A stretch of DNA of 64,000 nt from positions 197,594,001 through 197,658,000 of the forward strand of contig JBITNC010000001.1 in NCBI GenBank assembly GCA_050084985.1, given 5' to 3'. The translations under genes were made by a program, and so were the position numbers. Position 1 is the stretch's first letter. Each line of letters opens with the position of its first letter. The stretch comes from Nageia nagi (lineage: Eukaryota > Plantae > Pinophyta). Shown here piece after piece: positions 430-27,478 of this stretch. The notes beneath the pieces are model-generated. The model searched no databases. It was not told where the DNA came from and saw only the letters and a program-made list of their open reading frames with translations.

Positions 430-2311
430 TAATAATTTTATGGAGCTAGTCAAAAATATTAATCCTCAAGGTAACTTGGCCAAAAATAATTGGCCTACCT
501 TAAATCCTATAAATTCCCTCCTCCAAATTATTTTGGAGTCTTATATTTGGTGTCCCAAAATAATTGAGCAATACTATTTTAACCTTATGGCTTCAAAATA
601 AATTTTGAAAAAATTCACCACCAAAATAAAGCATTATGTCTTGCACAAATAATAAAAGATAATGTGGACAATAGTTATGTCTATTGGAAGTATTATTTTC
701 AAACTTTACTATAAATAATATAGATTTTTTATGGAAAAATACATCTCTCTCATACTTTCAAAATTATTCTCGTGGCTCGTGAAAAGAGGAGCCTTATCAT
801 CCCACTTATTTTCTCTCCAATTTTATAATCATGTGTTTTCCTAGTTATAGCATTTATTTGCTATAATTTGTGATATTATTTCTTGGTTACATGAAAGCCA
901 CCATACATTTTATTTTAGTGAAAGTTATATTAAATTTTAAGTCTTTAGTTTGTGAATGATGTTGATAAAATTTTATTCATATGCTCATGTCTTTATGCCT
1001 TAAAAATAATCCTTTTAGGCCAATAGTGTCATTTTAAAATTAATATAATAAAAAAAATCTCTTTTGATAATATCACATGTGGTGACTAGAGGGAATAATG
1101 GTATTACATCCCTTACATTATAAGGCATACCTCCCCCTTTGAGCAAATATCTTCTCCTTTTCTTCCCAACTTAACCAAAGGGAATTATTGGGTACTAAAG
1201 TTTGACTAGTTAATTATGTTTACTAGAACCCTTTGTAAACTAAAGCTTTTTCCATATTCTTTACTCATTCTCACCTCCCTCAAATGCTCATGAATGTTTG
1301 AGTTTGGGAACATCTTGGAAAAGATTATGTCATGTTTTTAAGGTAATGGGTGACTTTCATAATCCATTTCGAAGGACTTTTATTCATTCCAAGTCATTAC
1401 CTTTAATTTAGAAGAATTAGGATCTATCTGAGAAGGTGTCAATAAAATTGGGATTCTAAGGGAAATTTCATATACTACATGGTTGCAAAAATACCTTTGT
1501 AGTTATCAATTAAGTAAGATTATCAAATTGTTCTTTCAATAGTTTTTACTCTATTGATAAGTGGATTAATGCTTGAAGTCTAGTTATCCCTTCTCAATGA
1601 ATCGTTCTTACTAATCACAAACAGGTATGGAGGTACCCATGTGCTATCATTTTGGAACCCCTTAGCATCATAAGTTTTGATGAGAAAATGATTTGACATA
1701 TATTTTTACATTTGTATAGAGATAATTTTAGAAAGGGAGCTTTGATATTTTACTAATACTTTGTTGGCCTTTTCTATGAGTTGAATAACTTGTCGATTAA
1801 GTTGATTGTGTTTTCATTACAACTTATCAAATTCCTAGAGTAAATTGAGAAACACATACTCTATGTATGCAATCTTTGCTCAATTATTTTCCCCTTAAAT
1901 TCCATTCTTAATATTTTCTTAAGTTGTAGGGAATATATATGTATTTGAATTAATAAAAAGATTTGAAGAGGCTCTTGTTTTGAACCCATTCATCCTTCGT
2001 ATCTCACTTTGAAATGTCCTATTGGAATGGGATGCAAAATAATGGTTGATATACAATAAATCTTATCGAGTTTTCCCATCCTAGTTGGGTTTCATAGAGA
2101 GTCTTCCTATTGGAAAAGTTTTGTGTGTGTCATATTGCTCAATAAGGAGTTTGAATGCACTCTATGATGTCATATTAGATGCATGCGAGACATCATAAAT
2201 CATATTAAAAATCTTAAGAAAATTGAATGTTGATACAAATGTGGTGTTATCCATCTGAGTGATGATCTTTTATCATTTAATTTGGTGCTAGATCCCATTT
2301 CTCCCAATTTA
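430..2311. mobile_element. Highly decayed LTR-retrotransposon-like sequence that received the MULE insertion
   Basis: No intact ORF. Composition and short motifs resemble decayed retroelement DNA, which resumes after 15536. Family not assignable. Confidence 0.3.
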
Positions 2312-2321
2312 TTTTCTAAAT

Positions 2322-3590
2322 GGTGTTGGCTATCTAGCCTCTAAAATTCCCCCTTACTTTGACATGTTATCCCATTGGTATGTATGCCATGGGGGTTATA
2401 TGCACTTTGATTATTCTAGCCTAAATATGCTTCATTTAACCCTCCATATGCATGGGTTGTTGGGTCATTCTTGTCATGGCATGGCATCTCCCCATGCCCA
2501 TCTAGAATTAATCAAATTTCAATTAACCTCTCTAGAAATGCCATTTGATTAGTCTTGTTTAAATGCTTTTTGATTATGCAATATTAACCACCATTCAATT
2601 AACCCTTGATATCGAATGACCATTTGTGTCTAAGCATCATTTGATTAACTTAGAAATCGATGATGCTTGATTAACCCTATAGAATCGATGATATTTAATT
2701 AACCTCAATTATCTTGGGCTCTCCACTTTGAATATATATTGAGGATATCATTAATGGCATGGGTTAATCAAACTATATTTATGTGTACTATACACAAGTC
2801 AATTAACTCACACATTGTATTAGCCTGCCTCAAATTTACCATTGTACACTAATCGATGATGTTCAATTAACCTTAATTATATCAAGCTCTTCATCTTGTA
2901 TGTATCTCGAGTATATCATTAATGACCTTGGTTAATCAAATTGTATTTATGTAGCATATATGTAGTTTGATTAACCCATTCATCATATCATCCCACCTCA
3001 TATTTCAATGGGTGCCAACTACCGTACACACATCCATTAATGCAAAGGTTAATCAAACTATAATTATCAAGTTAAATGAAGTTTGATTAATCCTTCTTAA
3101 ATTTAAATGAAAATATGATCATTCTCATTCTTGTTTTATGCATGCTTAGATGTGGATGTTACAAGGAGCTCTCGAATGGGTAGCAAAGCTTAATACCAGG
3201 CAATTTTTTCAATTCCTTGGCTCTATTTATTCATTTTCTAGTTGATGAGTGTCCATGCATGCATGTCATTGGATTTTTATTGTGATCATTGCATTCCATG
3301 AGAGCACATTTTGATGATTTAAATACTAGGTAGTTTTTCAATTCCTTAGCTCTATTTGTTCATTTTTCAATTGATGAGTGACCATGCATGCATGTCCTTG
3401 AGTTTTTATTATGATCATTACATTCCATGAGATTGCATTTCGATGAGGCATTTCATACAAAACTTGACCTACCCTTTTAATGTATTCATTTTATGCATAT
3501 CTTGTGAGTATTGTAGTCCATGAATCTCAATCTTAGTTGTATAACCCTACTTGGTCCATTAGCAATGTATATATAATGATTTGTACACAA
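2322..3590 (+). repeat. Left terminal inverted repeat (~1.25 kb)
   Basis: Block-by-block reverse-complement match to 14270-15526, e.g. CCCCATGCCCATC / GATGGGCATGGGG and ACCCTACTTGGTCCATTAG / CTAATGGACTGAGTAGGGT. Contains many TTGATTAACC motifs. Confidence 0.85.
3405..3530 (-). pseudogene. PLS-class PPR gene fragment within left TIR
   Basis: Minus strand reads SWTTILTRYA*NEYIKRVGQVLYEMPHRNAISWNVMI, matching the PLS-PPR pattern SWTAMIAGYAQNG..EEA..LFDEMP.RNVVSWNAMI. Confidence 0.75.
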
Positions 3591-3916
3591 ATTGCTACTA
3601 GGTTTTTGAATTAAAATTTTAATTCAAAATCCATGCTATCCTATTCTAGAGGCTAGATAGTCTAGTTTCTTAGCTTATTCAAAAGTACTTTGTTGAATAT
3701 CTTAAGAAATAAAGCACACCATAAATGAAAGTCCTCATTCATAATATTTTGTAAGAAATAAATAAATGGAAATAAGCTCTTTGATGTTTTGGGATATAAT
3801 TCTCTTTGCTTTAATTAATATAGTGACTTCATTTAATTAATATTGTGACTTCATAAACTTCCATATGTAGGGAATTGGACCATGAATGAGGACTATAATT
3901 GACATCCTTAACACTT

Positions 3917-4161
3917 GATATAGAGCCCTAAATGGAGCTAATACTCCTAGTATGAGGGAATTAAGGGTAAAGGAATAGAAATTATCACATACGTTGCACT
4001 TATTTTTGAAGTATTCAATTTGGCTTTCAATATACTCATACTTGAAAAGCCAAACTAGATACTTTAATAATAAGCAAAATGTTTATGGTAAATTATATTC
4101 CTTTAGCCTTAACTTTGCCCTTGTCTTAGGAATGAGTTAGCTCCATAAAGAGCTTTGTATC
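3917..4161. repeat. ~245-bp imperfect palindrome (foldback hairpin)
   Basis: GATATAGAGCCCTAAATGGAGCTAA pairs with TTAGCTCCATAAAGAGCTTTGTATC. TAAAGGAATA pairs with TATTCCTTTA. TTGGCTTTCAA pairs with TTGAAAAGCCAA around a short loop near 4037. Confidence 0.8.
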
Positions 4162-4179
4162 GGCTACTACTAAATTTCT

Positions 4180-5420
4180 TCAATACACCAATAATCAACT
4201 ATATGGATGGAGAGCTATGAAGGTACATTGTTTAATGTCTTCCTCAAAATGAAACATTTGTAATTCTCAGGATTGAACTTTCATAATTCATAGACTATGA
4301 ATATTGACATCTACAAGCTAGGTTAAATACCAAATATTTGTTTACAAGGTTAATCAATTGAAGGAAAATGAAGGGCATTCTTCAAATCATTTTAGTACAA
4401 AAAATTGTATTTGTATCATGCATATTATCAAAATCACTAGGCCTCATTTGTTCTTCCACATGTATTTTGCATGCAAGTAGAACATAATTTTTTTGTATGC
4501 AAGTATAACACATAACTTTTAGGGGGTATAAATTTGTTGGTTGAGGATGGTTTGTGGATATTGCAATATTTGTTGATAAATTTTGGTTGAGAGATGTTAT
4601 TTAAACATAAATATACTATGAAAATGACAAGGTTACATGGAAGTAAATGTATATCAAGTAAAACTTTGAGAGTGATAGATGTGTATATATTTAATAGTGA
4701 TTTAATGAGACTTTGGTATTTGATTATCTATTCCTACTTAGCTTCCAATTGACATGGAACTAGAAACAAAAAATTTAGCAGCCCTAATTAGTAGGTGGAT
4801 TTTGAAGGATTTTCTTTGATGGGTATGATCATTAATGATTAGTCAAATCCTAAATTATTTATCCAAGTAACTAACACTTACTTTAACTACACTTTATATT
4901 TGATCTTGATTCCTATTTAGCTCTCACTTAATGGACCTTTCATGTATTCTTCCACATTTTGTATAAATATATAAACTAACTTCCAATGTTGACACAAATT
5001 TAGATCATTTAAGTCTAGATGATTTACAACGTTGCCTTCAAACACATTTTGATGGTTTGATTAAACATTATAAGGAGAAGGAGGAGCAGGTCCAAATCAT
5101 TGAAGGGGAACCAAAGTTAGAAAAAGATGAAATACTAAAATTGACAAAAGAGATAAGTTAAGAGAGGGACTTGCAAACATCCTAATCAAGGTTAAAGATC
5201 TTGAACTTGAAATATTTCTTCTGGGCGGTGAAAGAACTAAAAGTGTGAGGAGTTAGATGGGTTGTAGAAGGTTTTTAGTATGATAGATTTCATTTATTTA
5301 GTTATATATGCAATAAATTATACTTATCTTTTTTAAATGAGCTTGACCATGCCTGTGATGTGCAGGATTGACAAGGAAATATTGGGCAAAGTGGTTATCA
5401 AAGAACATGAATTTTTGATA
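4180..5420 (+). pseudogene. Degenerate multi-exon MULE internal gene, coiled-coil-like product
   Basis: Several short GT..AG intron-like segments (acceptors TTCTCAG ~4270, TACTTAG ~4741, TATTTAG 4920, TGTGCAG ~5365). The segment ~4985-5255 reads LDHLSLDDLQRCLQTHFDGLIKHYKEKEEQVQIIEGEPKLEKDEILKLTKE..., with stops and frameshifts. Confidence 0.45.
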
Positions 5421-6077
5421 CATTTATGCAAATTTTGTATGCATTTAGATATTTGTATCAATATATATCTCTAAATATTATGGATACATTGGCTATATGT
5501 CTTTACATATTTTGGATACAACCATTATATCTCTGAATGTTGTGGATACATTCTGAAGTTACATATTAATGTATAATATAGTTTTTACAACCTAAATAAC
5601 AATGGCATATCTTGTTACAATTAAATTCTGTGACATGGTGTATTGGTTTTTGATGTGTAGCATTTTCAATATTCTATATTTTGAATGTGTAGTATTTTAA
5701 ATGTGTTATGTATAATATTTTACTATTGTTATGATAGTCATTATATGCAATTTTTCTTATGTATAATATGTTACATGTGGAACTATGTGATAATTGAATA
5801 CAAATGTCCAATATACTATTTAAAAAAATGTACATCGTATTATTTTACAAAATGAAACTTTGAAATGAGGCATGGAAATTCATGGAAAATTAACTAGATG
5901 TGGGTTTCTTTTGCATGCAATAGTGATAAAAACCTTGATAGACATGTTTATAAAATTTGCAAACATACAAAATATAAGTGGTTTTTTTACAAGATGCAAA
6001 AATAATTTCATGGGATGCAATGATTGTAGAATATGCAAGGAATGTTTGTAGCAAGAAAACCATTAAAGTGTTTTAAA

Positions 6078-6635
6078 AAATGAAATATTTTTGCATTAGT
6101 GTAGATAATGTACATTAGTTAGTGTATTATATGCTTTTGTCACCAATCTAGTTAAGGAGGGTTATCAATACTTCACATCCATGAATGAAATATTTGCACA
6201 CATAATGGAATAAAACATGTATGGTTAATATTCTTATCCATGTAAGGAAATCATTTAATTGTTCAAATAAATGAAATATTTGGGCATTAGTGTAGATGAT
6301 GATACTTTAGTTAATGTATTATGCTTGTGTAGCCACATAGATCTAGTTAAGGAGGGTTATCACTACTGCACATCCATGAATGAAATATTTGCATAGATAA
6401 TGGAATAAAACATGTATGGTTAATCTTCTTGGCCATGTTAGGAAGTCATTTAAGTGTTTGAACAAATGAAATATTTGGGCATTAGTGCATATGATGATAC
6501 TTTAGTTAGGGTATTATATGCTTGTGTAGACAAATAGATCTAGTTAAGGAAGGTTATCAATACTTCACATCCATGAATGAAATATTTACATACATAATGG
6601 AATAAATGGTTAACCTTATTGGCCATGTTAGGAAT
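6078..6635 (+). repeat. Tandem repeat, ~192-bp unit x3
   Basis: AAATGAAATATTT(T/G)(T/G)GCATTAGTG...TCTAGTTAAGGAGGGTTATCA...CATCCATGAATGAAATATTT recurs at ~6078, ~6269 and ~6464. Confidence 0.9.
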
Positions 6636-6701
6636 TTTAAATAAAGTAAAAGACTATACTAATAAAAACTTAACACTTAATGTTTTATATGTTTGATTAA
6701 C

Positions 6702-7130
6702 CAAATTTGGGTTATATGAAGTTCAGTTAACCCTTTATATGCATGAAGAATTCAAGTTTGGGTTATACATAGTTTGATTAACCCTCAATATGTTCATAGA
6801 ATTTTCTAGTTTGGGTTATACATAGTTTGATTAACCCTCAATATGTTCATCGAATTTTCTAGTTTGGGTTATACATAGTTTGATTAACCTTGTATATGTT
6901 CATCGATTTTTCTAGTTTAGCTTATACGTAGTTTGATTAACCCTATATATGTTCATCAAATTTTTCAAGTTTAGGTTATATGTAGTTCAATTAACCCTAT
7001 ATATGTTCATCAAATTTTTCAGTTTGGGTTATATGTAGTTTGATTAACCCTTTATATGTTCATCGAATTTTCTTATACACAATTTTATTAACCCTTTAGT
7101 TTAGGTTATACATATTTTGATTAACCCTCT
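6702..7130 (+). repeat. Tandem repeat, 53-bp unit x~8
   Basis: AGTTTGGGTTATACATAGTTTGATTAACCCTCAATATGTTCATCGAATTTTCT. Units start at 6755, 6808, 6861, 6914, 6968 and 7021, with degenerate flanking copies. Confidence 0.92.
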
Positions 7131-8989
7131 ATATAGTTTGGGTTAGGTTCCATTTGAGTAAACACAGTTTGATTACTCACTATTGGTTATATGAAATTTG
7201 ATTATAAGTGTTGGTGTTAACAAAAAAAATTGCATTATTTATTGTAAGCAAATTTTGAGCAAAATACAAGAAATGCAAAATTTGCTCAAAACTTGTTGGT
7301 AGCAAGAAATGCAAATTTGGCTCAAAACTTCACTTACTCACTAAAATGATTATGCAATTCATGAAGGCAAATCAATCTAGCATACAAGGATAATGTAACA
7401 TCTCTATTCCTCCATTTCATGAAAGATACCAAAACACCTAACAATTATGATGCCAAATCAATCCAATATACAAAGATGATGGTAACAACTATGATCCCAA
7501 AGCTAATGAATAATGGTAATGTACAATGGATGCTAATAAAATTCTATTACATCCCAAAGTATATAATCCTTATACAAAATAATTTATACAAGTCTACTTA
7601 GATAGTTTTAGGTTACCAAAAGACATACATATAAAAGTGTATTATATGATAAATGTCTATCCTTCTTGTTCCTTGTAAAACTATTTTGATCTTTTAACCA
7701 CTTCTCTCTTTCTTTTCCCTTCAACCCATAGGGAGTTATAAAAGTGTGTTTTACTCTTTTGGATGGTTTCTATGTACATTCAATGTTTTCTTCACTATCA
7801 GGTATATCTTGTGATATTAAGTTGAGTGAAAACTACAATTGGTTCATCATATGTGTGGATAGAATTTGACCTTGGGTCAAGTTTTTGTATACATTGTTCA
7901 ATCATTTTGTAATAAAAAAAATTTATGAAGTATTCTTTATAGTCTTACTTTCTTATGCATTTTAGTTTTCCATTATAGTATAATTATGTTTTCATGCCAA
8001 GTTTTAGTATAAAATATTTTGTACTATCATTTGGAAAATGATACCCATCAATATCAATTACATAGTATATATCCTCTTCCATCAACAAAATAAAAAATAT
8101 GCATCCCAAGTAACTACATAAACTTCTATTTGACCATTTTGTATGAAGTCTTCCTACATAGAATCAAATGAGTCAAGGCCACTCAGATATGGACATAGTT
8201 GATTGATAATTTCTAATATGAACATGATAAAATATTTAGCTCCCATTGAGAAAGGTCAAATTTTTCTCTACAACAAATTAAACATCTCAAACTGTCCATC
8301 TGGGTAATTTTTTATAGTATTCTTTGCCACACATATCTCTCCACTCTGCACTTCCATCATTATAATTTTATCAAGTGCTTTCTTTGATGGCAATATTCCT
8401 AGGTTTTTATATAACTAATTGATAATTTCTAAAAGCAACATCCTATAATCACTTGAACCGTTAACACCTTCATTGTACTAGTATTCATTTTCCTTGAAAT
8501 AATTTGTGTAGAGTTTTGTGCTTTTATCCTTGGTCATGAACTGTTTGGGGTAAAATCTACCAGATTGGCTAATATTGGGTTTAAGAAGAATACCTCCACC
8601 CTAGGCCTGCATGGGACCATTAAAAAGATCAATTATACTCAAACATGCTAAATAATTAAATTGATACATTAAAAATTCTCCACATTAAAGTTAATATGTT
8701 GAAATTGATACATTACCTAGTGTTTGATATTTTGTGGAGGATGTGAGACTTTATAATAGACCCCAATGTTATTTTCTTTTGAATTAGTTTGAACTAACTC
8801 ACCACATGTCTACATGGACCAAAACAAATGGAGTATTAGATAATGGTATAGACATACATCAAAGAGTAGTTGAAAATGGCTATCTGAAACAATTTTACAA
8901 ACTTTTATGCAAGTGTAATTTTCAAGTGTAAAGGTAAACTCTACAACCTGAGTGACTTTTATCATAATATTCTTGGGATGAATCTCAGT

Positions 8990-9960
8990 TTATGTCCCCT
9001 TCCCTTCATCTACATTTGCATTTGAACTTGTTATTTTTTGCATAGCACTTTCTTGTGTCACATACAAAATATTAAACTAAGGACAATGATAAAATTATAA
9101 ATACAATAGCTACAAGTATAGTGCAAATGAACTATATACTTGATCAAAATACTACCATCTACATTTTATTTTATCCTATTTTGTGTCCCCTTCCCTTCAT
9201 ATGCATTTGCATTTGAACTTTTTATTTTTTACGTGGCACATTTCTATTTCACAAACAATTATGATAAATGATACATTGGAGGATAAATATTAAACTAAGT
9301 CCAATGATAAAATTACCAATACAATAGCTATAAGTATAGCACAAATGAACTATATACTTGAATCAAACTGCTATCATATGCATTTTCTTTTATCCTATTT
9401 TGTGTCCCATTTCCTTCATATGCATTTGCATTTAAACTTTTTGTATTTTATGTGGCACATTCTTGTTTCAAAATAATTATGATAAATGATAAATAGGAAG
9501 ATAAATATTAAAATAAGTACAATGATAATAATATTCCAAATACAATAACAATAAGTATAGTACAAACAAACTATATACCTTAATCGATGTTCTACAATCT
9601 ACATTTTCTTGCATGATACATTCAATAGCACTAACCTATGGAATATAGAATTATGAGAAATACAACTATAAATATTAAGCTAAGTACAAAACTCTTTACA
9701 AGGCTAGCTCTTCGGTGGAAGTAAACACAAACTATATACCTAATTCAAAGTACCATGATCTGCATTTTATTGTGTCCCCTTCCCTTCATCTACATTTGTA
9801 TTTGAACTTTTTATTTTTTGTGTAGCACCTTCCTATCTCATATAGAAGGATAAATATTAAACTAAGTACAAAAATCATTACAAGGCTAGCTCTCAAGTGG
9901 AATAATGAACAAACTATATACCTTATTCGTATTGCCACAATCTGCATTTTCTTCATTTTC
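8990..9960. repeat. Imperfect tandem repeat, ~190-220-bp unit x~5
   Basis: TGTCCCCTTCCCTTCAT..CATTTGCATTTGAAC and AAATATTAAACTAAG..AACTATATAC recur, e.g. at ~8993, 9184, 9403 and 9773. Confidence 0.85.
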
Positions 9961-10059
9961 ATGTATCCCATTGCATTCATTTAATGTCTTCCATTTTCCT
10001 GTGTTGCATTCCCCACATATTGAATAAAAGGTGTCTGTATGAAAATATCAATATGCAAA

Positions 10060-11305
10060 GATGTGCAATGTCATAAGACAACTAAGCAACAAGATCAAGC
10101 TATCCAATTTAATGTTATTACAATACATACTTATATGCTCACCTCATGTATCAAGCTTAAAATATGAGAAGAGTTTGTCTCATTGAAAGGTTGAGCATTC
10201 TCTACCAATGCATTAGTCTCACCACCTCTTTGCATGGAGCAAAATAAGTGGATTATAAAATATTAATGACATTATCAATTTCAAAAAATATGTCATAAAT
10301 GTAATATGCATATATGTGCAATGTCATAAGATAACTAGGAACCAAGATCAAGCTATGTAATTTAATGTCATTACAAGATGCATTTATATTCTCACCTCCT
10401 ATATCGAGCTCAAAACATAAGAAGATTTTATCTCATTGAAAGGTCGAGCATTCTCTATCGATGCATTAGTCTCACTACATCTTTGTATGGAGCAAAATAA
10501 GTGGATTATAAAATATTAAGCACTTTGTAAATTTTGAAAAATATCTCATAAATGCAATTTGCATAGATGTGCAATGTCATAAGAAAACTAGACAACAAGA
10601 TCAATCAATCTAATTTAATTTCATTACAATATGTATTTATATGCTCACCTCTTGTATCGAGCTTAAAACATGAGAACAGTTTGTCTCACCAAAAGGTCGA
10701 GCATTCTTTATCGATGTATTGGTCTCACCACCTCTTTGCATGGAGAAAAATAAGTGGATTATAAAATATTAACAACATTTTCAATTTCAAAAAATAACTC
10801 ATAAATGCAATCTATGTAGATGTGTAATGTCATAAGACAACTAGGCAACAAGATCAAGCTATGTAATTTAATATCATTATAATATGCATTTATATGCTCA
10901 CCTCTTGTATCGAGCTAAAAATATGAGAAGATTGTATCTCACTAAAAGGTTGAGCATTCTCTACTGATGCATTGGTCTCACCACCTCTCTACTTGGAGCA
11001 AAATAAGTGGATTATAAAATATTAAGGACATTATCAATTTCAAAAAATATCTCATAAATGCAATCTGCATAGATGTGCAATATCATAAGACAACTAGGCA
11101 ACAAGATCAAGCTATGTAATTTAATATCATTACAATACACATTTATTGCTCACCTCTTGTATCAAGATCAAAATATGAGAAGAGTTTATCTCACTGGAAG
11201 GTTGAGCATTCTCTACTGATGCATTGGTCTCACCACCTCTTTGCATGGTACAAAATAAATGGAGTATTGAATATTAATGATATTTTTAATTTTGAAAAAT
11301 ATCAC
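10060..11305. repeat. Tandem repeat, ~253-bp unit x5, each carrying an 87-nt exon-like segment on the minus strand
   Basis: ATGTGCAATGTCATAAGACAACTA...CAAGATCAAGCTA recurs at ~10061, 10314, 10568, 10820 and 11073. Exon-like segments: 10143-10229, 10396-10482, 10649-10735, 10902-10988, 11154-11240. Confidence 0.92.
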
Positions 11306-14269
11306 AATACTAAAGAAGAAAATAAATAATAATTAGAAGCTCACCTCCTCATGTGGGGGACTCTCTAACGATAAATTTTCATCGCTAGCACTTCTACCTT
11401 CTCTAGCATTGGTATCTCCATGATCAAAGATTTCATATTTAGATCTATCAACATATTTAGAATCTTTGAAATGTATGATAGATGGTTCTCTTCATGCTTC
11501 CAATTCCTCCAAGGATATAGGTATAGTTCTACCCTAAACATGGAAAATATACATTAGCACAATAAATAACTACAAAAATATGACTACCAAAAAATAATGC
11601 ATGTACCTTTATGTGTTCATTTATCAAATGTACCTTCCAACGAGCTTATCTTTTTTCCTATGAATCATAGTTCATCATATCTATAGCAATATTTTCCTGC
11701 TTCCATTGATAGGTCTAATTTTGAAGTCACCTTCTCCTCAGTCATAGCCACCTTCACAAATCTATTTTGTTTGGATTTATAATTGTTGCAAAATACATTT
11801 TCAGGCTTTGTTTTCTTTTTAAGTATATTGCTAGGTTATACATTGATGGTATTGAAGTTATTATTATTGTTAGCCTACCCCTTTTCAGTTCTAGTATATA
11901 TGGTAAACCTTCATGTTGGTCCCTCATATAGTTATTAAAGTCCATATGCGACCAAATTGGCAAATGTGGATAAGAATTACATCTACCAATCTCACAGTGG
12001 TATCTCAACTTGCCACTCCTCTTGCTAGTATGCCATTTGCCTTGTAGACCATGTGCATACTTAGTGTTATCTTGTTACAAGTGAACATGATCAAACATAA
12101 TAAGTAAATTGTTTACTTGCATACTTATAATATTATTTCATAAAGAAATGTTGAAATGAATACTAATCATTTCAAAGTTAAATGTTGTCACCATAAGCTA
12201 GACCATCAATTGAAGTTTTTCTTATACCTATGCATTATTAAAACACATTAGTCAATAAACATTGCATGTATAATGATTCATACCAAGAATAATGCAATAC
12301 AAGGAAATGAAAGTGTTGTTTACTTGAGAACAAGCATAAGATCTTAAATTTGTTATTCTAAGTATCTCAAATGAAAGGGAGATATTTTGAGTTGTTTATT
12401 TTAAAATTGTTAGTAATTTCTAATTTTTCATGATGAATACTTTGAGTAATTAAAAATATATGATCATGTTGTTTTTGGTCATTTGGGGAATTTAGCTTAT
12501 CCATTTACCTATCATTTATATTTATGAAGATTTGATCTTATCAAATAATAAGGATTATTAGAATGCCTTTCCTATTTTTATGAGGATTGGAAAACTCTAG
12601 ATATGACATTATAAAACCTTTTTAAGATACTTTATACTAATGAAATAAATAATTGAAATTTTTTGCACATTAGATATCCATTAGTGCCAATTTTTTATCT
12701 ATCCTTGAAAAGGTACATCCTTACATATATCCTTTGCGTAGTGTTTTTGATCCATGTCATTTTTTTTCTCATAAATATGAAGGTACATATATTTAAATGT
12801 GTTCCATTGATGATCAAAACTATTTTGAATTTTCTATCTTTGAAATATAGTGTAATATATAATGATCCTCATAAATGTAATTGGATTGATTTGACCTCTA
12901 GCTTGTTTCTTCAATGTAGCAAAGATTTATGACTCGCATACAATTGTAGAGAGAAGATATGACCTACGCTTTGACGATGGTGGTAGAAAAATATAGTGTT
13001 CTTGGTATCCCTTATAGATTTAATACAATAATGAAATATGTGAAAGCAATCATTAGATGTAAAACCAAGTTAATATATATATATGTACTTATATGCACAT
13101 AATGAGTTACTCGTAATAGAAGTTGCAAGGTCATATACTTCTATGCATTCCCAAGGATAACAACATGCTTTACAAAGATAGCTCTTTAAAAAAAATATTA
13201 GTTTGGTGATTTTAACACAAATAATTTTTAGGTGTAAATCCAAAATTTGGATTTGCATATGCTTTAGATGTGATTTGAGATGGATTTAAGTGAGCATTAT
13301 GATTCTCTAGAAAAGGAAAACTTGAAAGTACTATAGAAGCAAACACTATTGTGATGTGGAAACACCATATTAAAATTATCATGATTAATGAGGAGAAAAA
13401 TGTTGCGGCATACAACACTTCTTAGTATATTTAGGATTGTTATATGTTGATATAATATTGCCCAACAATTAGAACACATTAAAATTTGGACAAACTTTAT
13501 CATTGGATTTTTTTAAGAACATGATTTATTTAAGAAATTTAATTTGACATTGGCCATACACTCATGAACTTATTCTTGGAAAGAGAGTAAGGTTTCATAT
13601 ACTCCATTTTAAAATTGACCATACAAATGGTAAGGAATACTCTATTTTATATTTTCAATCATATAAACTAGATGTCAAATAATTTGTAATCATACCAACT
13701 AGATTTAACAAACCATTTAATAACATAAATAATTATGAAACAACATGGTTTCAATCAAATTTGTATATAAAATACTTATAAAGAAACAAATATTTTAGCA
13801 TATAAATGTTAAAATCATAGAGAGAACTTGAGAATTTGTGTACTAATTATATTTAAAAACTAACAACCCTTATTAATTGTCTACTTAATCTAAATAATTC
13901 GTTTTAGCTTCTCAAATTGAAAATAAATATTTTTTTATTTATTAATATGTTTGCTAGTTTGATCCCTAGGGTTTAAATTAATTTTCTTGTAATCCTTTGG
14001 AGTAGGGATTGCTCTATCAAATTCATTCTTCTTCTGCAAATTAGATTTGATTTTCTATAGGTAGGGAAAATACAATCCAACTATTTTTCTAAATCTATGG
14101 CCTCTCCAAGCATTAGAGAAATAGTGAACTCATAGAAGCAAGGGCATCCAAAATGCATGGTGTTTTCCCATAGAATTAAACGTGTATTATATGAGTAAAG
14201 ATGGGTAAATGTAAATAATTTAAGGCACCATAATTTAATCGCATGAGTGACTCTAATCACGTTATTCTT

Positions 14270-15526
14270 GGTATGAATCATTTGACATACATTACTAATG
14301 GACTGAGTAGGGTTTTATAATTGAGATAGAATCAAAGCTCAATGATTTTAAAACTAACCATAAAGAGACAAAATTTGAGCACAAGGATTTGAAATGCATG
14401 ATGTCGACATATTTTCATTGATAAGAATAATCATACGATATGCACAAAATGGATACATTGAAATGGGAGGTTAGAATTTTGATGAAATGCCTCATCAAAA
14501 TATATTTTGATGGAATGCAATAATGGGAGATTATGAAATTGATGAGTAGCCTCATCAAAATGTACTTAGGAATTTTTTAATGACATACTACAAGAAGCAT
14601 ACTTTCATGGAGTGTAACACAAAAAACTTGTATGCAAAAAAAACCCTAAGATGCACTTGAACATTCATGTATTGCAAAATGAATAAATAGATATAGAGAA
14701 TTGGAAAACCTACCTGGTATTGAGCTTCGATACCTGTATGAGAGCTTCCTACAACATTCACATCCAAGCATGCACAAAAATAATAGGAATGAGAATGACT
14801 CTTTTTATTTTATTTAAATGGAGTTAATCAAACTTCATTTAATGGGTTATACAACATTCTATTAATCTTGCAATCCTTCACACATGTTAAACCATAGTGT
14901 GTTGGAGGTTAATCAACCTAGGTATAGCTTCTAATTGAAGTTTGATTAACCTCCACATTAATGGATGCATGTATGATGGTTGACACTCATTCAAATTGAG
15001 GTAGGCTGATATGACATGCAGGTTACTTGACCTATGTATAGTCCACATAAATATAGTTTGATTAACCTAGTCTATTAATGATGTCCTAGATATGCGTTCA
15101 AAGTGGAGAACTCAATATAATTGAGGTTAATCGAATATCATCGATTCTACAAGGTTAATAGAGCATCATCAATTTCTAAGTTAATTGAGCTATTCTTAGC
15201 CTTGAATGGTCATTTGATATTAGGGGTTAATCGAATGATGGTTAATCTTGCATAATCAAAGAACATTTATACAAGAATAATTGAAAAAAAAAAATTTAGA
15301 GAGGTTAATCGAACTTTGATTAATCTCGGATGGGCATGGGGGATGCCATACCATGATAGGAATGACCTAAAAACCCATGCAAATGAAGAGTTAAATGAAC
15401 CATATTTAGGTTGGGGCAATCAAAGTACATATACTCCCATGGCATGGCTTGACGGGTCATGCATGCATACCGATAGGATAGCGTGTTAAAGTATGGGGGA
15501 ATTCTAGAGGCTAGATAGCCAACACC
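14270..15526 (-). repeat. Right terminal inverted repeat (~1.25 kb)
   Basis: Reverse complement of 2322-3590, diverged mostly by transitions. Many GGTTAATCAA motifs. Confidence 0.85.
14390..14570 (+). pseudogene. PLS-class PPR gene fragment within right TIR
   Basis: Plus strand reads IIIRYAQNGYIEMGG*NFDEMPHQNIF*WNAIMG. Confidence 0.75.
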
Positions 15527-18500
15527 TTTTCTAAATTTGTATTACAAAATTTGATGAATGCCACAAATATGGAGACATATTGTAATGGATGGTTTCATTA
15601 TAGAATAATTTAAATAATTGAATTACATCCTTTTTCTCGATTTTAATTAGTATAATTTTAAAATTATAACGATATGACTCTTTTTAATAGTAACATTTAT
15701 GCAAGCTTTGATGATACCATCTTTTTAGTATGGGTTTATTAATTAAATTAAATTTTAAAGCTTTATTGTGAATTGGAAGGTGATGAATTTAATTACCTTA
15801 TGATTTTATGAAATAAGTTTAGTTGGGATAATGAGATGTTATGGATTTAATAGAAATTTTCCATTCATTATACTTAATCTCATTTAATTAGTACTATTAT
15901 GTACTTTATAGAGATGAATTGTAAAAGATGTGGATAACTATATGAATAAGAATGGTGAATTGAAATACATTTTAATGATTTTTATAAGTTTCTTCATGAT
16001 CGAGGAAGAGAGGTAGTCCTTAAGTGAGACCTTGACCCTATATAGATCAAGAACATAGCATTGAGTAAATGTTTGCCTTTCATAAGTTGAAATTATTTGA
16101 TATAATGGATTGGATTGAACAATCACGCATCTAGGATAGGATGCATGTTATTCCACTAAAAGAGTTGTCTTGATCCTCAATATACTCATAACAAAATCCT
16201 AGTATACATTTGGACTAAAAAGATGATAAAGTTTTGAAGACCCATAAAATGAATAAGATTGATCATGATGAACTCTTGTATACAAACCCTACAATGATTA
16301 ATATTCATCAATAATGTGGAAACTAAATAATAATCAAACAAGTTGTATATTTATACAAGGTGTTGTTGTATGTTATTTTCATAGTAGATCAACATGATGT
16401 ATCTCTATCTTATTTGTGTTAAGTCAATAAGTTTACATTTGATTACAAAACCTTGAGTCATACTTGTCTTCAAGATCCAATAAAGGTTTTAGGGGTATAC
16501 TCATTGATGTTACCTTTATGATGTAATTGTATAAGTTTCTATTCAATGAATAAATGGGATAGATCATTGTTTTGATAATTATTGGTCTATATTGAACGAA
16601 GGATATAATAATTAAGATATTACTATAAGAGAATAGATTCAAATTTAAAATGATAAATTTAGTTGTTAAAATAATAACAACATCATATGAGTAAGATAAT
16701 TAGTTCATAACCTAAATAAAAGCATCACTAAGATGAAAGCCATAAGTATCTTTATAGAGGACCATAAGTAAAGAGAAAAATATAATCTAAGGTGGTACAT
16801 GCTTAATCTCAAATAATGATCGATATAGATCAAATAGGTATGACACCTAAGGATGTAAACTCATAATGGAATGATAGCATATAATATAAATAATAGATCA
16901 AATCATCATGTGGCTAATGTAACATAGCATGCTATATTGATATGGATGGATTCAAATAGGACCATATGAGAAATGTAACAAATAGATACACTAAGGTTTT
17001 GTGTGTCTAAGAATATATGGATTATTCTATAAACTTTTCAAAGTGTTTGATATTATAAGTGTCAATTTTTTTTTGTGAACATTATTTGAATTTAAGTTAT
17101 AATGTTTGAAGAAGAAGATAGCAATTATAATGCCTTATATAGTGATGTTGGAATAAAATATGCACCCTTGGTTAGTTGAAAAGAAAAAATAAGGAGACTT
17201 AACCAAATATAGTGATCATTGGCTAAAGAATACTAATGATTGATGGTTGACCTAAAATTAAAGTCAATTGTGTGAGAATTCTTGTTATGAATTCATTAAT
17301 TGTTTACAACGACCATCAAAAATTTTGGTTCCTAATGTTAAAGAAGAGTGGACAAATTATTTGTTATGATTATACTAAACGATGAGATAATCTTATCCTA
17401 AAATATTTCCTGAGTGAGGACCACTCTATGCTACACTCCCTTACTAGGATTAGCCACCTTAAATATTTCTCAGGACTTATTATTACCCTTTGGTAGAGTC
17501 ATACTTTTAATGTTTTATTCCTTCTATCTAGTTGTGCATGTGGTATTTTTATTGTAAAGCATTGTTGAGTATATTTTATAAGATATTTTCTTGAGTATGC
17601 TTTACTTCACATCTCTTCATGAGCACACTTGGAATGACTAATGCCATTAAGTTTTATGACTATAGTTATGATGTTTTGAATGTATAATATAATTGTTTAT
17701 GAATATATGTTGATAAAGATAACTTAGATTTATTTTGAGATGTTATGTATTCTCACAATTAGATAAACCTAGAAGACCAATAATTGGTTCAACACTAATT
17801 ATTTCTAGGAGCGGTAATTGGGGTGATTTTTACTTTATATCCTTTTTAATAAAATGATTAGACAAAAGAAACCACTCAAGGATATTATTGATATGTTGAC
17901 CAAAATATCCATGGCTTCCTAAGATATGGGCATGGGGATGCCAGAAAACATGTTAAACCTAGCTAATATATATGGATAGGTTAGTATTCCATACCACTGA
18001 CAAGTTGTCAAATAGGGATAATAGATAATAAAATTATGATTACTAGGTGATGGTAACTTGTATTCATATTTCCTATGGTTAAGCATATACGAATATGATG
18101 ATTTTTCCATAAGGCGATGATGTTATACCTATATTTGATGGAAGATTACTTTAGGACAATCTATCTACACCTATGATATGAAGGGTTATTCATTGAGTGA
18201 AGATTTATAAGCTTATGGACAAGCATTCTCTTGGGTGATATGTGCCCCAAGTAGAAAACCACAACACTATGACTAGATTGTTCATAGGAAAAATCATGGA
18301 AAAAAATGGTGGGATCACTTATGTGGCATATCCACAATAGGGAGATTATTGTGAAGTGAACATTAAAAAGATTTTTATGAGGGTTGGTTAATTTGGATTT
18401 GGCCAATATTGCCACATGGGTGCTAACTAGCTAACAACATTGACATGCTCATGTGGATTACCTTTTTACATTCCCAAATTATTCAAGTGGTAAAAAAAAT

Positions 18501-18649: not shown

Positions 18650-21365
18650 AAGTGGAGACATGGAAGAACTAAGTGTTCCTATCACCCTGCTTCAACAAAT
18701 TGATTTCCAACTTATACTTCCACTTTAGCTCTTCTTGTTCAAGAGTGTTATGTCAATGACCTAGTATTTCCCTTTCTTTCTAATGAATCTTTTGCATGCA
18801 TCTATGCTTTTGAAAATGATCCCCCATTACTTTCATTTGATCTTAAATATATGCTTTCCTCTTGGGAAAGAAACTAAATGTTTCTCTATTCCAAACCTTA
18901 AGATTTTTCTTGATGAATCTTAGTTCCTTTTCTCTTTGGGAAAGGGGCAATCGTAAAAAGCTCTACTTACACCAATTTTTTATATGATCTTTGAGGTTGT
19001 CATGTATTAACCACATCATTTCAAAATGGAAGGGGAAATTGAATTATCTTCTTTGCTCCTATGTTTCCTACAACAAGGGATCATGATCAAAGCTAAGTTT
19101 GGGATAGCCTATGAGTGTGGAGTACACAAACTTAGTAATATAGTCTTACAAAATTGGCAATCTATTTAACCTCTCTCAGATGTGAAACTCACCACATATT
19201 CCATTAGTCCAAGTAAACTTGGTTCTTCTTATTTACATATCCATAAGATTATTCTCGTTGATGAAATAAATAAAGTCTCTCATGCTGTCTATGAATCCTT
19301 CCACTTCCCATTTTATTAGAAGGATATATTGAAGAATTTAAATCTCTTGCTAAGATCCAGCTAATGCCCAAAAATGCTTCCCTCGTATATTCAAAAGAGG
19401 ACTAAATAGTTTTCCTCCCAGCATAAGTAGTTGGAGCATGCACATTTGTAATGATAAATATTTCCTTGGTATCCAAGGAAGTGAAAAGAATAGAACCAAA
19501 ATTAGAACTAGAGACAATCAACCTACCTTCCAACTTGTTACTATCCTACAAGAACATAGATCCCTCGTATTTGTCTATGGCATGAATAGCAACATACTAT
19601 GATTCTGTCCATATTTTTTTTAATAGAGAGGGATTTCCCTTCAATAAATTTCATCTCTTGAAGTAAAATAATCTATGATTTTATATCCTTTTTCAAAGCT
19701 ATTATTCTTTTGTATCTTTTGGGAGCATAGATCCCCCTTACATTCTAAGTTAGGATTTTCATTGCTATAGGTTTTTTCCTTCCCCCATCCCTCAAAAGGG
19801 TAGCTTGGGCTCCCTTTTCAATGTTAGCTTTAGTTTCTTGGAGCCTCACAAAATCTTTTAAGGGCCTACCTAGGTGTTCCTTTCCAATATTTCCATGTGG
19901 TTTCTTCTTTTGGTTTCTTATTCAACTTAGGGTTCTTGGAGTTTGAATCCTATTCCTCTCCCCAAAAACCTTCTAACTGCTATGAGTAATTGTATGGGAG
20001 CAAGGTTTCTCTCAAGTTGTACAATAGGGACTCAAAATTTCTTCTCATGTTGACCCTCCACTAGTGCAGGGAATTAGGTTTTTGGTACTGGTTCCTACAC
20101 ATCACTTGGATTCTCCACTTGTATTACATGCTCTTCTTAGGTATGTTATATAATTTTTCCCTTTATGTAATTAAGATTTCTTCTTATGATCTAAGTGCTC
20201 TTCTTCCTTTTCCTTCTCTTCCAACATAGCCATCAAGACTTCCCCTTTTAATAGTTGGGAGTCTATAACATGTAACATAACTCTCTCATAGGCAGAGTTT
20301 TACTTTTTTGGTTCCTTATCCTAAGGCTCCACTACCTCTAAACTAGGGATGGCATTGTGCATTAGAAATATGTTGTCTTCATTTTCCTTTAAAGATCCTG
20401 AGGTTTCTCCTTTATCTTGTATATGAGATGGGTATTTTCCTACTTATTATTCTTTTTTTGTTTACTTGTTTCCTCACTAGGCACCATGAAAAGGGATGGC
20501 CCTTCTACTTGTAAACCTCACATGTTTGAGGAGGATTCTCATACTCTATTGGTTGGGTCTATTCACCTAACTCAAAAAGTAAGTTAATAGAATTAGGTAG
20601 ATTGGTCATGGGGTAGATGCTAACATAGAGTCAAACAAATATCATGCAAGATTTGGCCCTGATGGCCTTATTGATGGTAATCATATCCCCTATCTAGTTA
20701 CCAATCCCTGCTAGGACTTCATCATGCATGTATTGTAATGGTATCCCCAGAAGCCTTACCCAAATTAGGACCAAGGTAATACTTTGGGTATTAGGATCAA
20801 AATTAGGCTCCCACTTCTTTAGAAAAATTGCTTATTTTTAAACCATCTATGACCCACCATACAAAACATTTTTAAGATATCCCAAGAAAAACTTTATCAT
20901 AAAGAACCCATTAGGAAGAGCAACAACATCAAATATTCCTTTAATTTTCCACTTCTAGAAGGCCCATTGTTTAATTGAATCAATGTTCGAATAGGGTACA
21001 ATAAACTTTTTTATCAAGTTTAGAGTCCCTTCCTCAGTAGTAATCTTGATAATTTCTAGAGGGATCTTGAGTTTTCCATCCAAAGCTTTCAGTTTAAAAC
21101 AAGTTTCCAGAGGAGAAATAATGGCTCCCCTTACCACTTGGGTATAGGAGAGTTTCTTCTTTCTTATTATATTCTATTCATGTGGACCCTTAATATCCAA
21201 AGGCTTTGGGTACATCATCTCCTCTAAAATCATATTGGAAATATCCTTAACTATTGAAGGATATTCTCATTAGTTGATGCTTTGGATCTGATATCCTCGA
21301 TCGATCACCATTCGACCTTCAGGCCTACCATGCCTATGTTTGCTCTCCATGCTTTGTACCCCTCC
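18650..21365 (-). mobile_element. L1-type LINE remnant (ORF1 DUF4283-like region plus ORF2 endonuclease), lacking RT
   Basis: ORF1 motifs LPNGFF..., FLKKWEPNFDP and LIWVRL (20540-21000). ORF2 start MKILT*NVRG at 19762, then FIITNVHAP (~19450) and FHFEMMWL (~19020). Confidence 0.85.
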
Positions 21366-21389
21366 ATAAATTGGCTCTTTTTTATCGCT

Positions 21390-21690
21390 CATGTATTTTT
21401 CATACATATCTACAAGGATTGTTATTACAATTTCATACAAAAGAAACCAACATCTAATTATTTGTTCATGAATATCGATGCCCCATTTTAAAGCTACAAA
21501 AATTGCATATATAGTCAAAATACTTGTAATAGTTGTTTAATCTAGTGTGAAACTAATCAATTGCATTTTCTAAAAATACTTAAGAGCCACTAAACCATGC
21601 TCATTCTATGCATATCCTATGATCATTACATTCCATGAGATTTTCTCTTCTAAAAAGATTTGTAGCTTCCTTAAGAAGCCCAAAATTATT
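21390..21690 (-). pseudogene. PLS-class PPR pseudogene fragment
   Basis: Reads ISWNVMIIGYA*NEHGLVALKYF*KMQLISFTLD*TTITSILTIYAIFVALKWGIDIHEQIIRC...ILVDMYEK, a typical P-L-S motif succession with premature stops. Confidence 0.85.
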
Positions 21691-24327: not shown

Positions 24328-27164
24328 TTATGAAAATGACTATCAAACGATCATTTTTATAGCGAAAAGGATCGTATGACCACTCGTTTTCCATCTATCA
24401 GATATAATCTATCCAATGAGGGAGTTCTTAGTGTATTTGGATAGTTGTATGTCTATATATATATAAGATTAAACATGTGGGAATTTCTTACTCTCATTAT
24501 TTTTGTAACTGAAACTGAAGAGGTTGTAATTGAATGGCCATCATTAGTAAATTTATTGATCAAAAGTGGTTTGTGGATGAAATAGAAAAACAAATTAAGT
24601 GTATCCTAGCAAAAACAAGGTGATTATTTCAATAAAGTAACTAAAAAAGATGGTTGAGGATAGTTGCAACTGAGAACAATCGACTAGAATGGTTTGAGAA
24701 TAGCCAAGTAAAAGTGTGGATGATATGGAGATGATGTGCTGCTATTGAGGTGTGTAGGCAATGAGAGGTGTTTCAAAATGCAGAATGTTATTACAGAAGT
24801 GTATGCCAAGCAAGAAGGGTGGATTTGCAGAGATAACAAGATAAGGAGGATTATTAATAGTATAGTGGAAAATTTTTTGCTAAGACAAAAAAGATACTGG
24901 AAGTTCTAAATTGTTTCAAATGGCAACGCTTCATTTCTCAATAGTGTCGAGTTGGGGGAGGCTATAAAAACCGTCTTAATATATTTAACTAATGTTTTAC
25001 ATAGTTTATTAAGATGTATCAATTCTTCAACCACTAGCAATTAAGGTTTGATCTATACCATTTTCTCATATGTTGTATATGAAATTTCTTAGACTTCATG
25101 GTTAAACTTGTTATGAAGCATGTGAATTGAGATTTCCATCAAATTTCATGTTTTTCCTACTCATATTAGAACTAAAGGAATTCCTTCCATTTAAGAAAGA
25201 TATATCATTTCTTTGTTTAAAATTGAGGAATATCGAGACATTTATGCATAAAGACATGAAAAATTCATATATTACCAATAAAGGATTTTTCCTTCATTAA
25301 ACTTGAGAAAATAGTTTTGTGACCATTGGATCCCAAGTAGAACTTCTCATAGTATTATGGCACAAGCTCTAACAAGGTTGTTTGGATCAGCTTTGCTAGT
25401 GTACTTATGTAAGCTAAGTATCAATAATGTTAATAGATAATATGGGGTTATTTGTGATGAGTCCTTGAATTACTACAACCAATTGTTAGAAGTTCAATTG
25501 TGATAGAAGAAAATTTTGTAGTTGAGATTTTTATTGAAACTTTTGAGCTATTAATAGAATTATTGATATTGAGATAGTCATAGTTATGTTTGGTGGAGTT
25601 ATTAATATATTATTAAGGAAGAAAATAGATTAATTAGGAGAATAAGATATAATATGGAGGCATGAATTGTGAGGTTGCAATATTTCAAAATTAAAAGCAT
25701 TACAATGGAGTAAATTGAATTGAATGTTGCTTTTAGTTTGAGTGTCTAGGTAGAATTACGCAAAAGTATCAAGGACAAGGATGGCAAGGGACATTAAGAT
25801 GCATAATTGGGACAAGGCATGGGCACCCATACTTATAGCAAGTCAAACAAAAACATAGAAGAACATGAAGATGTAGCCAATCTAAGTTCTTTCATACAAT
25901 GAAGCACAATACATAACAAGAACTAAAACTATGAAATTAGGAGATGCTAACATTATCAATCTCCAATTTAATGAAAAATAATGAAATTCCCTAGGTAAGG
26001 ATAGGGATGGGAATGAGGACGTTAGGGACAAGGTTGATCCCTTGGGGTTGGGGCATGTATCCCCATATAAACTTAGTGTTTAGTGTCTTGATTTTGGAAG
26101 TTGAATTTGTTATATCTTAAATTCTTTAATGCTATCCATTAAAGCAAACATCAATTGAGCTTTCTTATCTTTTGATTTTTTGAAGGAGTTAACTAATTGA
26201 ACATGTTTTCATTGTACAAAAAATTTATTGCTTTGTGAAGTATTGTATCGCACAAATAATGCTTTTTATCTTTTAATCAAGCTAATTATTTCCTCTAGAT
26301 ATTTAAAGGGCATCCCCTAATATTAAGATCTCAAAGAATTAAGGATAATGTCAAGCAAAAATCATTTCCAAAATGTCTTTTAAGTTTTCAACCTCAATAG
26401 AGGACTTCAACTTGATGAAAACGTCATCGAATGCTCAAAAAAGTAGAGAGACAAAATTTATAAAATAAATCGAACACATTCAATAGTAAGCCCAAAACAT
26501 AAAAATAATTCAATAAGGAGTAAAAATGAAGGAATGAGCATCCTTACTGGTACAAAGTTGGAACAAGCTTCAATTGCTTTCTCAAAGGCAATGATTGATG
26601 AAACACCAAAATAAATGTCCTTTTAATTGTGCCCCATTTACAATAATCAAGAAAATAGGACTATTTAAACAAACAAATTTTCCTCAATCAAATATTCATG
26701 TAATAACTTCATATATATATATATATTTGTATTATGTTAAATCTCTCAACAAACTATTATTAATATATAATTTTCTAAATACACTTTTTATATTTTAAAT
26801 ATATATTCTATAATGTATTAAATGAGATTCTAATTCGAATCCCACAAAACCCAATCAAATATTCATGTAAGAACTTTTCATTCATATATATATATACATA
26901 TGCATGCATCAATTATGCTTTTTCAATGAAATCCTGAATTCAAAACACAAGCAAATGCTCTTTAACTTGTGTAATAACTCCACCTATGATAGTTATTTTT
27001 ATAATTCTGTTTCTCCATACATAGATTAGTTTTTAAGTTATTCATTTTTTTATAAAGGCCATCAGAGGATTGCTACAGTTGAAAATTGAAGGGCCTGTGG
27101 TGTCCCTATCCTTTGAAAATATTTGTTCACCAAGAGATCAGAATATCAATGGTATAATGACAAA

Positions 27165-27478
27165 TGTTACTAGAAGCCAATTTCTAGGACTAACTGCAGA
27201 TAAATGCCACTACAATTACAACAATTTATGTAAATATCATCATGGAATGTCCACAATTTTATGTGAGATATAGATAATCCACTTACTAGTCATAGCACAC
27301 AAAGAATCAGTCAAACATAGCATTCATGTCACTGGAAGCCAATTTCTAGGACTAATTGCAGATAAATGCTACTGCAATTACAACAGTTTATGCAAATATC
27401 ATCATGGAATGTCCACAATTTCATGCGAGATACAGATATCCACTCCACTTACTAGTCATAGCACACAAAGAATTAGTC
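27165..27478. repeat. ~150-bp direct duplication downstream of the helicase stop codon
   Basis: GAAGCCAATTTCTAGGACTAA..GCAGATAAATGC..CATGGAATGTCCACAATTT..CCACTTACTAGTCATAGCACACAAAGAAT at 27165-27312 and 27327-27478. Confidence 0.9.

Follow-up and report, generated by a model that had tools for sequence, protein, structure and literature searches.

We analysed a 64-kb stretch of plant DNA from Nageia nagi (the window), which is AT-rich throughout (28-38% G+C), and found near its left end a 13,205-bp element (2322-15526) that is bounded by terminal inverted repeats (TIRs) of more than a kilobase, lies between the two copies of an exact target-site duplication (TSD), and is probably an old and decayed Mutator-like element (MULE). 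The features that define its ends are as follows.

2312-2321, no strand: left copy of the TSD, TTTTCTAAAT, read directly from the sequence, identical to 15527-15536 and flush with the terminus
15527-15536, no strand: right copy of the TSD, TTTTCTAAAT, likewise read directly
2322-3524, plus strand: left TIR arm, from blastn against the reverse-complemented right arm, with weak homology continuing to 3586
14414-15526, minus strand: right TIR arm, with weak homology from 14271
12118-12292, plus strand: partial third copy of the part of the TIR nearest the interior, in opposite orientation to 14262-14444 (65% in a blastn match of 188 bp)

The termini begin GGTGTTGG, and the terminal 22-mer GGTGTTGGCTATCTAGCCTCTA forms a perfect inverted pair (plus strand 2322-2343, minus strand 15505-15526) with no third match in the window even when three mismatches were allowed (none expected). 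Only a length of 10 bp places the direct repeats flush at both termini, and lengths of 8, 9 or 11 bp do not fit. The perfect 22-bp termini and the exact 10-bp TSD had both been reported in an original prediction made from the sequence of this window, and both hold. The same is true of the kilobase-scale inverted homology that it had put at about 1.25 kb: a gapped blastn alignment sets 2322-3524 against 15526-14414 (E 2e-153) and extends weakly to 3586/14271, giving paired arms of 1203 bp and 1113 bp. These arms share 77.6% identity across 1074 ungapped columns, among which we counted 135 transitions and 106 transversions. Given that neither the TSD nor the terminal 22 bp has lost its perfect match, much of this 22% difference was probably already present in the family before the element inserted.

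We also considered whether the element is a composite of two small elements and rejected this, since the inner ends of the arms lack a further copy of the terminal 22-mer, so that the arms are not two whole small elements. MULEs with multiple or tandem TIRs, described from tomato and other plants (PMC3310237), share with this element the enlarged or compound ends and an extra partial TIR segment, here at 12118-12292, a situation that resembles that of MULEs with extra TIRs; in contrast to them, the terminal motif is unrepeated here, so that the arms do not consist of complete TIRs stacked together.

The interior of the element, together with the inner parts of its arms, contains the following features.

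3341-3490, minus strand: fragment of a PLS-class pentatricopeptide repeat (PPR) gene towards the inner end of the left arm, found by phmmer against PDB and overlapping a 129-bp tandem duplication at 3205-3446
14448-14525, plus strand: PPR-derived stretch of the right arm, recognised as homologous to the fragment of the left arm (tblastn, E 0.003)
5860-6606, plus strand: internal PPR pseudogene fragment, in which an S-type motif runs into an L2-type motif and the latter is amplified as a 195-bp array
6053-6606, plus strand: 195-bp tandem array (x2.9) within the PPR pseudogene fragment
6690-7126, minus strand: 53-bp tandem array (x6 at 6706-7073) built on GGTTAATCAAACT, the same motif as in the TIR arms
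8952-9953, no strand: tandem array of about 218 bp (x2.5), placed by TRF at 9067-9607 with 84% and extended by repeat families D4, D7, D12 and D15
10049-11303, no strand: 253-bp tandem array of five copies that are about 85% alike
4433-4941, no strand: 509-bp segment absent from some other copies of the family, as seen from contig joints between 4432 and 4942 in all three sequencing runs compared below
11757-12074, minus strand: longest open frame (106 aa), the "C2H2-like" piece of the original prediction, in a region (11699-12074) of which 11699-11945 is common to another copy of the family

The 13-nt motif GGTTAATCAAACT ties the arms to the interior. With up to one mismatch allowed it occurs 17 times in the whole window, against 0.2 expected, and all 17 occurrences fall within the element, where they are distributed over each arm and the internal array at 6690-7126 and run in either direction; its 9-nt core is present in 8-9 copies per arm, and the 53-bp array aligns weakly with the left arm at 2812-3095. 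The arms also contain short tandem duplications of 28 bp and 129 bp, the second of which (3205-3446) adds length to the left arm, and the larger share of each arm is free of tandem repeats. The four arrays in the middle of the element, which the original prediction had rightly noticed, take up about a quarter of its length, with units that are 84-89% alike, and may have grown by slippage or unequal exchange. A full-text literature search for the terminal and motif strings returned unrelated primers only. A long-TIR MULE with TTAACCCT-type motifs through its ends is a candidate relative.

A parallel to this arrangement of motifs is provided by Muta1 of Aedes aegypti, a foldback-type MULE that likewise combines a terminal motif with many short subterminal repeats, which in that element strengthen transposase binding, cleavage and excision, and whose non-autonomous derivatives are moved in trans, as we propose for the present element (PMC5499845). 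In Muta1, however, the repeats are tightly tandem within a TIR of the 145-bp class and the ends are 97% identical (PMC5499845), whereas the present element has its motifs dispersed in either orientation across 1.2 kb, has arms with 78% identity, and carries an additional internal array of the motif with a 53-bp unit.

Judged by similarity to solved proteins, the sole coding remains that can be recognised in the element come from PLS-class PPR genes: a fragment in each arm, towards its inner end, and a further one in the interior. The left-arm fragment matched the synthetic PPR-DYW protein 9kfx_A (phmmer against PDB, E 1.9e-8) with the motif EMPxRNxISWNxMI; in the right arm, a 31-aa open piece at 14379-14471, next to the PPR-derived stretch, had no match in a direct PDB search. 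The internal fragment keeps one reading frame through about 12 stops. Its first 60 codons (5869-6048) matched the PLS9-PPR structure 5iww_D (E 1.7e-10) and 9kfx_A (E 1.3e-7) in the PDB search, and a unit of the 195-bp array (6271-6393) matched residues 335-369 of 9kfx_A, an L2-type motif (E 3.2e-7). A protein-language-model search of the 5860-6606 stretch ranked PPR clusters best, and all of the hits with a Pfam assignment among the matches listed were PPR.

Non-autonomous MULEs that carry host gene fragments are called Pack-MULEs (Jiang et al. 2004, as summarised in PMC3310237 and PMC5499845). As the recognisable cargo here consists of PPR gene fragments, with matches to solved PPR proteins at E 1.7e-10, 1.9e-8 and 3.2e-7, the element is Pack-MULE-like and an instance of a known phenomenon. 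It shares with Pack-MULEs a TSD of the 9-11-bp class, long TIRs, the absence of a transposase, and host fragments, here of PLS-class PPR genes, between and within the TIRs. It differs from them in arms of 1.1-1.2 kb rather than the usual 100-500 bp, in having a captured fragment in both arms, in the quarter of its length that is tandem array, and in its gymnosperm host. The PPR pieces may have been captured in the way proposed for Pack-MULEs, and the incorporation of one such piece into both arms would have lengthened the TIRs; the excess of the arms over surveyed TIR lengths is partly due to this built-in PPR fragment and to the duplications. A further decayed PLS-class PPR fragment lies beyond the element at 21270-21690 on the minus strand (PLS9-PPR, E 1.5e-5), its DNA being 79% identical to 5853-5956, and PPR scraps seem to be scattered through the genome.

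We compared positions 1400-7300, which include the left part of the element, with the contigs of two DNA runs from related organisms and of one air metagenome. Summed contig depth was 0-14 in the left flank, climbed to 70-118 in the bin where the terminus falls, and lay at 70-1380 through the interior as far as 7300; the step at the left terminus was seen in three runs. Depth peaked at 5900-8760 and about 3800 over two PPR-derived stretches, the higher of these values belonging to the left-arm piece at 3341-3490. About 7000 contigs were placed, most of them less than 90-95% alike, and contig joints showed that some copies lack other segments besides 4433-4941. Because the contigs pile up from the left terminus inward, are mostly diverged and include deletion variants, this comparison of sequences points to an old family that exists in related plants as numerous copies, diverged and with deletions.

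Some further observations came from the same comparison. Depth over the PPR-derived stretches 3370-3566 and 5734-6127 was 10-100 times that over the rest of the element, reaching 8760 against 70-570, either because PPR motifs match the whole gene family at 80% identity or because the fragments have been amplified by transposons. The air metagenome yielded over 1000 contigs that belong to this repeat family and presumably stem from the airborne pollen of some related, wind-pollinated plant. No RNA run contained the 1400-7300 stretch, which is not proof of silence. In a separate metagenome scan, a pattern that represented the first 32 bp and tolerated transitions gave one match (L001), which we discarded as a low-complexity, unrelated chance hit.

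We then turned to coding capacity, for which the original prediction had claimed two decayed, spliced genes pointing inward. Protein searches were made with single stop-free pieces; the Pfam scan covered 10 hand-picked pieces and then all 117 stop-free pieces of at least 38 aa. None of the 117 matched any Pfam family (best E 0.005 over 117 tests, which is noise), and this includes C2H2, RING, PPR, MULE, DBD_Tnp_Mut, SWIM, Peptidase_C48, hAT, CACTA and PIF domains, among them the four profiles (MULE, SWIM, C2H2 and RING) that the prediction had singled out. Regular expressions for MURA-type signatures, a weak test, had no match in the element. The longest open reading frame (ORF), of 106 aa, is what chance would give, since the mean maximum in 300 composition-matched simulations was 107 aa. 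Frames of at least 45 aa were in excess (82 observed against 58 simulated), probably because the repeat units and the duplicated arms are not independent.

No gene was thus detectable on either strand, and with it no convergent pair of a mudrA-like and a second gene such as a MuDR-like element has. The cargo proposed in the original prediction, a coiled-coil gene on one side and a gene with C2H2 and RING domains on the other, is not supported, its frames being of chance length and matching no domain (the coiled-coil piece at 4967-5158 had no homologue in the protein search), and the accessory or anti-silencing module that these genes were suggested to form loses its support for the same reason. 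We also rejected coding by two inward open frames at the tips of the element, 2322-2549 on the plus strand (76 codons) and 15323-15526 on the minus strand (68 codons), which are in the same phase: each has a probability of 5-9% by chance at the local 40-45% G+C, the two are homologous to each other, and 2322-2549 had no homologue in the protein search, so that we regard them as a coincidence. Rfam and tRNA scans of the window returned nothing.

The 106-aa frame itself had no PDB, Pfam or atlas match. Among 1.84 billion representative proteins its single relative was P0001 (E 1.5e-10, 58% identity), an unnamed 82-aa singleton from a 1386-bp Logan contig, which in turn has no Pfam family, no usable atlas match and no other homologue among 5.8 billion proteins. 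In a tblastn alignment P0001 covers 11945-11699, with one frameshift in the present copy. As P0001 comes from another copy, the region 11699-12074 is part of the repeat family and offers no evidence for a present or past gene; a protein identity of 58% is about what would be expected of neutrally diverging copies whose DNA is 80-85% alike.

Taken together, we consider it probable that the element is an old, immobile, decayed and non-autonomous long-TIR MULE of Pack-MULE or foldback style that once moved in trans. Its exact 10-bp TSD falls within the 9-11 bp that are characteristic of MULEs and, among plant superfamilies, unique to them (PMC3310237); another account gives 8-10 bp (PMC5499845). 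Its arms of 1.1-1.2 kb far exceed 100 bp, long TIRs being a MULE hallmark (PMC3310237, PMC5499845), and foldback-type ends are common in the superfamily (PMC5499845). The long-TIR Mutator/foldback-like identity put forward in the original prediction is therefore upheld by the TSD, the long arms, the subterminal motif and the multi-copy status of the family. The 117 pieces contain no MURA-type DDE transposase (MULE, DBD_Tnp_Mut, SWIM), which is not required of non-autonomous members, and it is because the element has no recognisable transposase that mobilisation in trans, also foreseen in that prediction, is suggested. The element entered an AT-rich site as a single unit, creating the 10-bp duplication, and a MURA-type transposase supplied from elsewhere would have mobilised it.

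Several points weigh against this assignment. Neither in this copy nor in a partner did we see a transposase, and the assignment to a superfamily thus depends on TSD length and end architecture. Since the PPR pieces found by the PDB search were missed by Pfam, the latter is insensitive on short pieces, and a badly decayed transposase remnant may persist. Arms of 1.2 kb are longer than the TIR ranges of published surveys, which are 100-500 bp in one (PMC3310237) and 14-500 bp in another. The TSD evidence comes from this single copy, and the depth of contigs, which covers 1400-7300, is not a count of copies. Dispersed subterminal motifs are, moreover, also found in hAT, CACTA and P elements.

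The alternative that survives best, and which we nevertheless regard as rather unlikely, is a dead autonomous MULE, perhaps with two genes, whose transposase and/or opposing accessory gene has become unrecognisable wreckage, for example on the minus strand at about 14270-11700, with the P0001-like frame as the 3' end of the former gene. The frame at 11757-12074 on the minus strand does have an uninterrupted 82-aa homologous ORF in another copy and a frameshift here, the 2.5 kb between the right arm and this longest frame would accommodate a transposase-sized gene, and the insensitivity of Pfam on short pieces leaves room for such a remnant; two-gene MULEs with fast-evolving ORFs on the opposite strand are also known (MuDR, and Abermu with its ORFR; PMC9168764). 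However, no piece matched MULE, DBD_Tnp_Mut, SWIM or Peptidase_C48, no MURA-type motif was found, and the open frames are not longer than chance; P0001 lacks a Pfam family, an atlas relative or any other homologue among the 5.8 billion proteins, and its 58% identity is close to that of neutral DNA 80-85% alike. Likewise, we think it very unlikely that the minus-strand region at 11.7-14.3 kb, the 3' part of which is common to the uninterrupted 82-aa ORF of P0001, is what remains of a family-specific gene without known relatives, whether an accessory gene of a gymnosperm MULE, comparable to mudrB or ORFR, or a transposase that went unrecognised.

There is at best a slim chance that the element is a TIR transposon of another or undescribed superfamily with a 10-bp TSD by happenstance. 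Such an origin would be consistent with the lack of a transposase tying the element to MULEs, with arms that exceed the surveyed MULE range, and with subterminal motifs dispersed in both orientations, a pattern that is classic of hAT, CACTA and P elements. The termini, beginning GGTGTTGG, are nevertheless neither CACTA nor the hAT consensus. The 8-bp TSD of hAT and the 3-bp TSD of CACTA and PIF elements cannot sit flush in a geometry that admits 10 bp only. TSDs of 9-11 bp are restricted to MULEs among plant superfamilies (PMC3310237), the capture of gene fragments and very long TIRs are typical of MULEs, and foldback-type ends are known in MULEs (PMC5499845). Finally, a local inverted segmental duplication with a coincidental 10-bp flanking repeat, to which the arm identity of just 78% and the lack of any sign of mobility in this copy might point, is barely credible given the exact direct repeat flush with perfect 22-bp inverted ends (chance about 4e-6 at this base composition), the depth step at the terminus in three runs, the restriction of GGTTAATCAAACT to the element, and the presence of another copy in a public contig.

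The TIRs of the present element are about six times longer than those of MuDR, for which the original prediction gave about 0.2 kb. The layout that this prediction had proposed, with inward genes and repeats between them, is that of maize MuDR and barley Abermu, which have at least two ORFs, one of them on the opposite strand (PMC9168764), whereas no mudrA-like or other gene can be demonstrated here.

The value of the element lies mainly in annotation, as a clean and complete example of a MULE-like family with very long TIRs and PPR fragments in a gymnosperm; no novel module with an accessory or anti-silencing role is revealed by it. Catalogues of DNA transposons are sparse for gymnosperms, and ConTEdb lists no MULE class for three conifers. 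The 1.2-kb TIRs extend beyond the 14-500 bp of published MULE surveys, with part of the surplus being a host-gene fragment in both arms. PPR-like fragments spread by elements of this kind could inflate PPR gene counts and could seed small RNAs against PPR genes.

Elsewhere in the window, exons of a DEAD-box RNA helicase lie at 28200-28890 on the minus strand (Helicase_C, E 1.5e-15, with a helicase motif near 28287), which places the element about 13 kb downstream of them. A Copia-type long terminal repeat (LTR) retrotransposon occupies 34697-40151 on the minus strand, with gag, an SH3-like integrase tail and RVT_2; its LTR ends, spaced about 5.16 kb apart, are 91-94% alike, a closer resemblance than is found among the arrays or between the arms of the MULE-like element. 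A fragment of a Gypsy-type reverse transcriptase-RNase H is found at 33393-33689 on the minus strand (RT_RNaseH, E 1.3e-8). Young local tandem duplications are present at 46556-46769 (107 bp x2, 96%) and 27164-27478 (about 160 bp x2, 90%).

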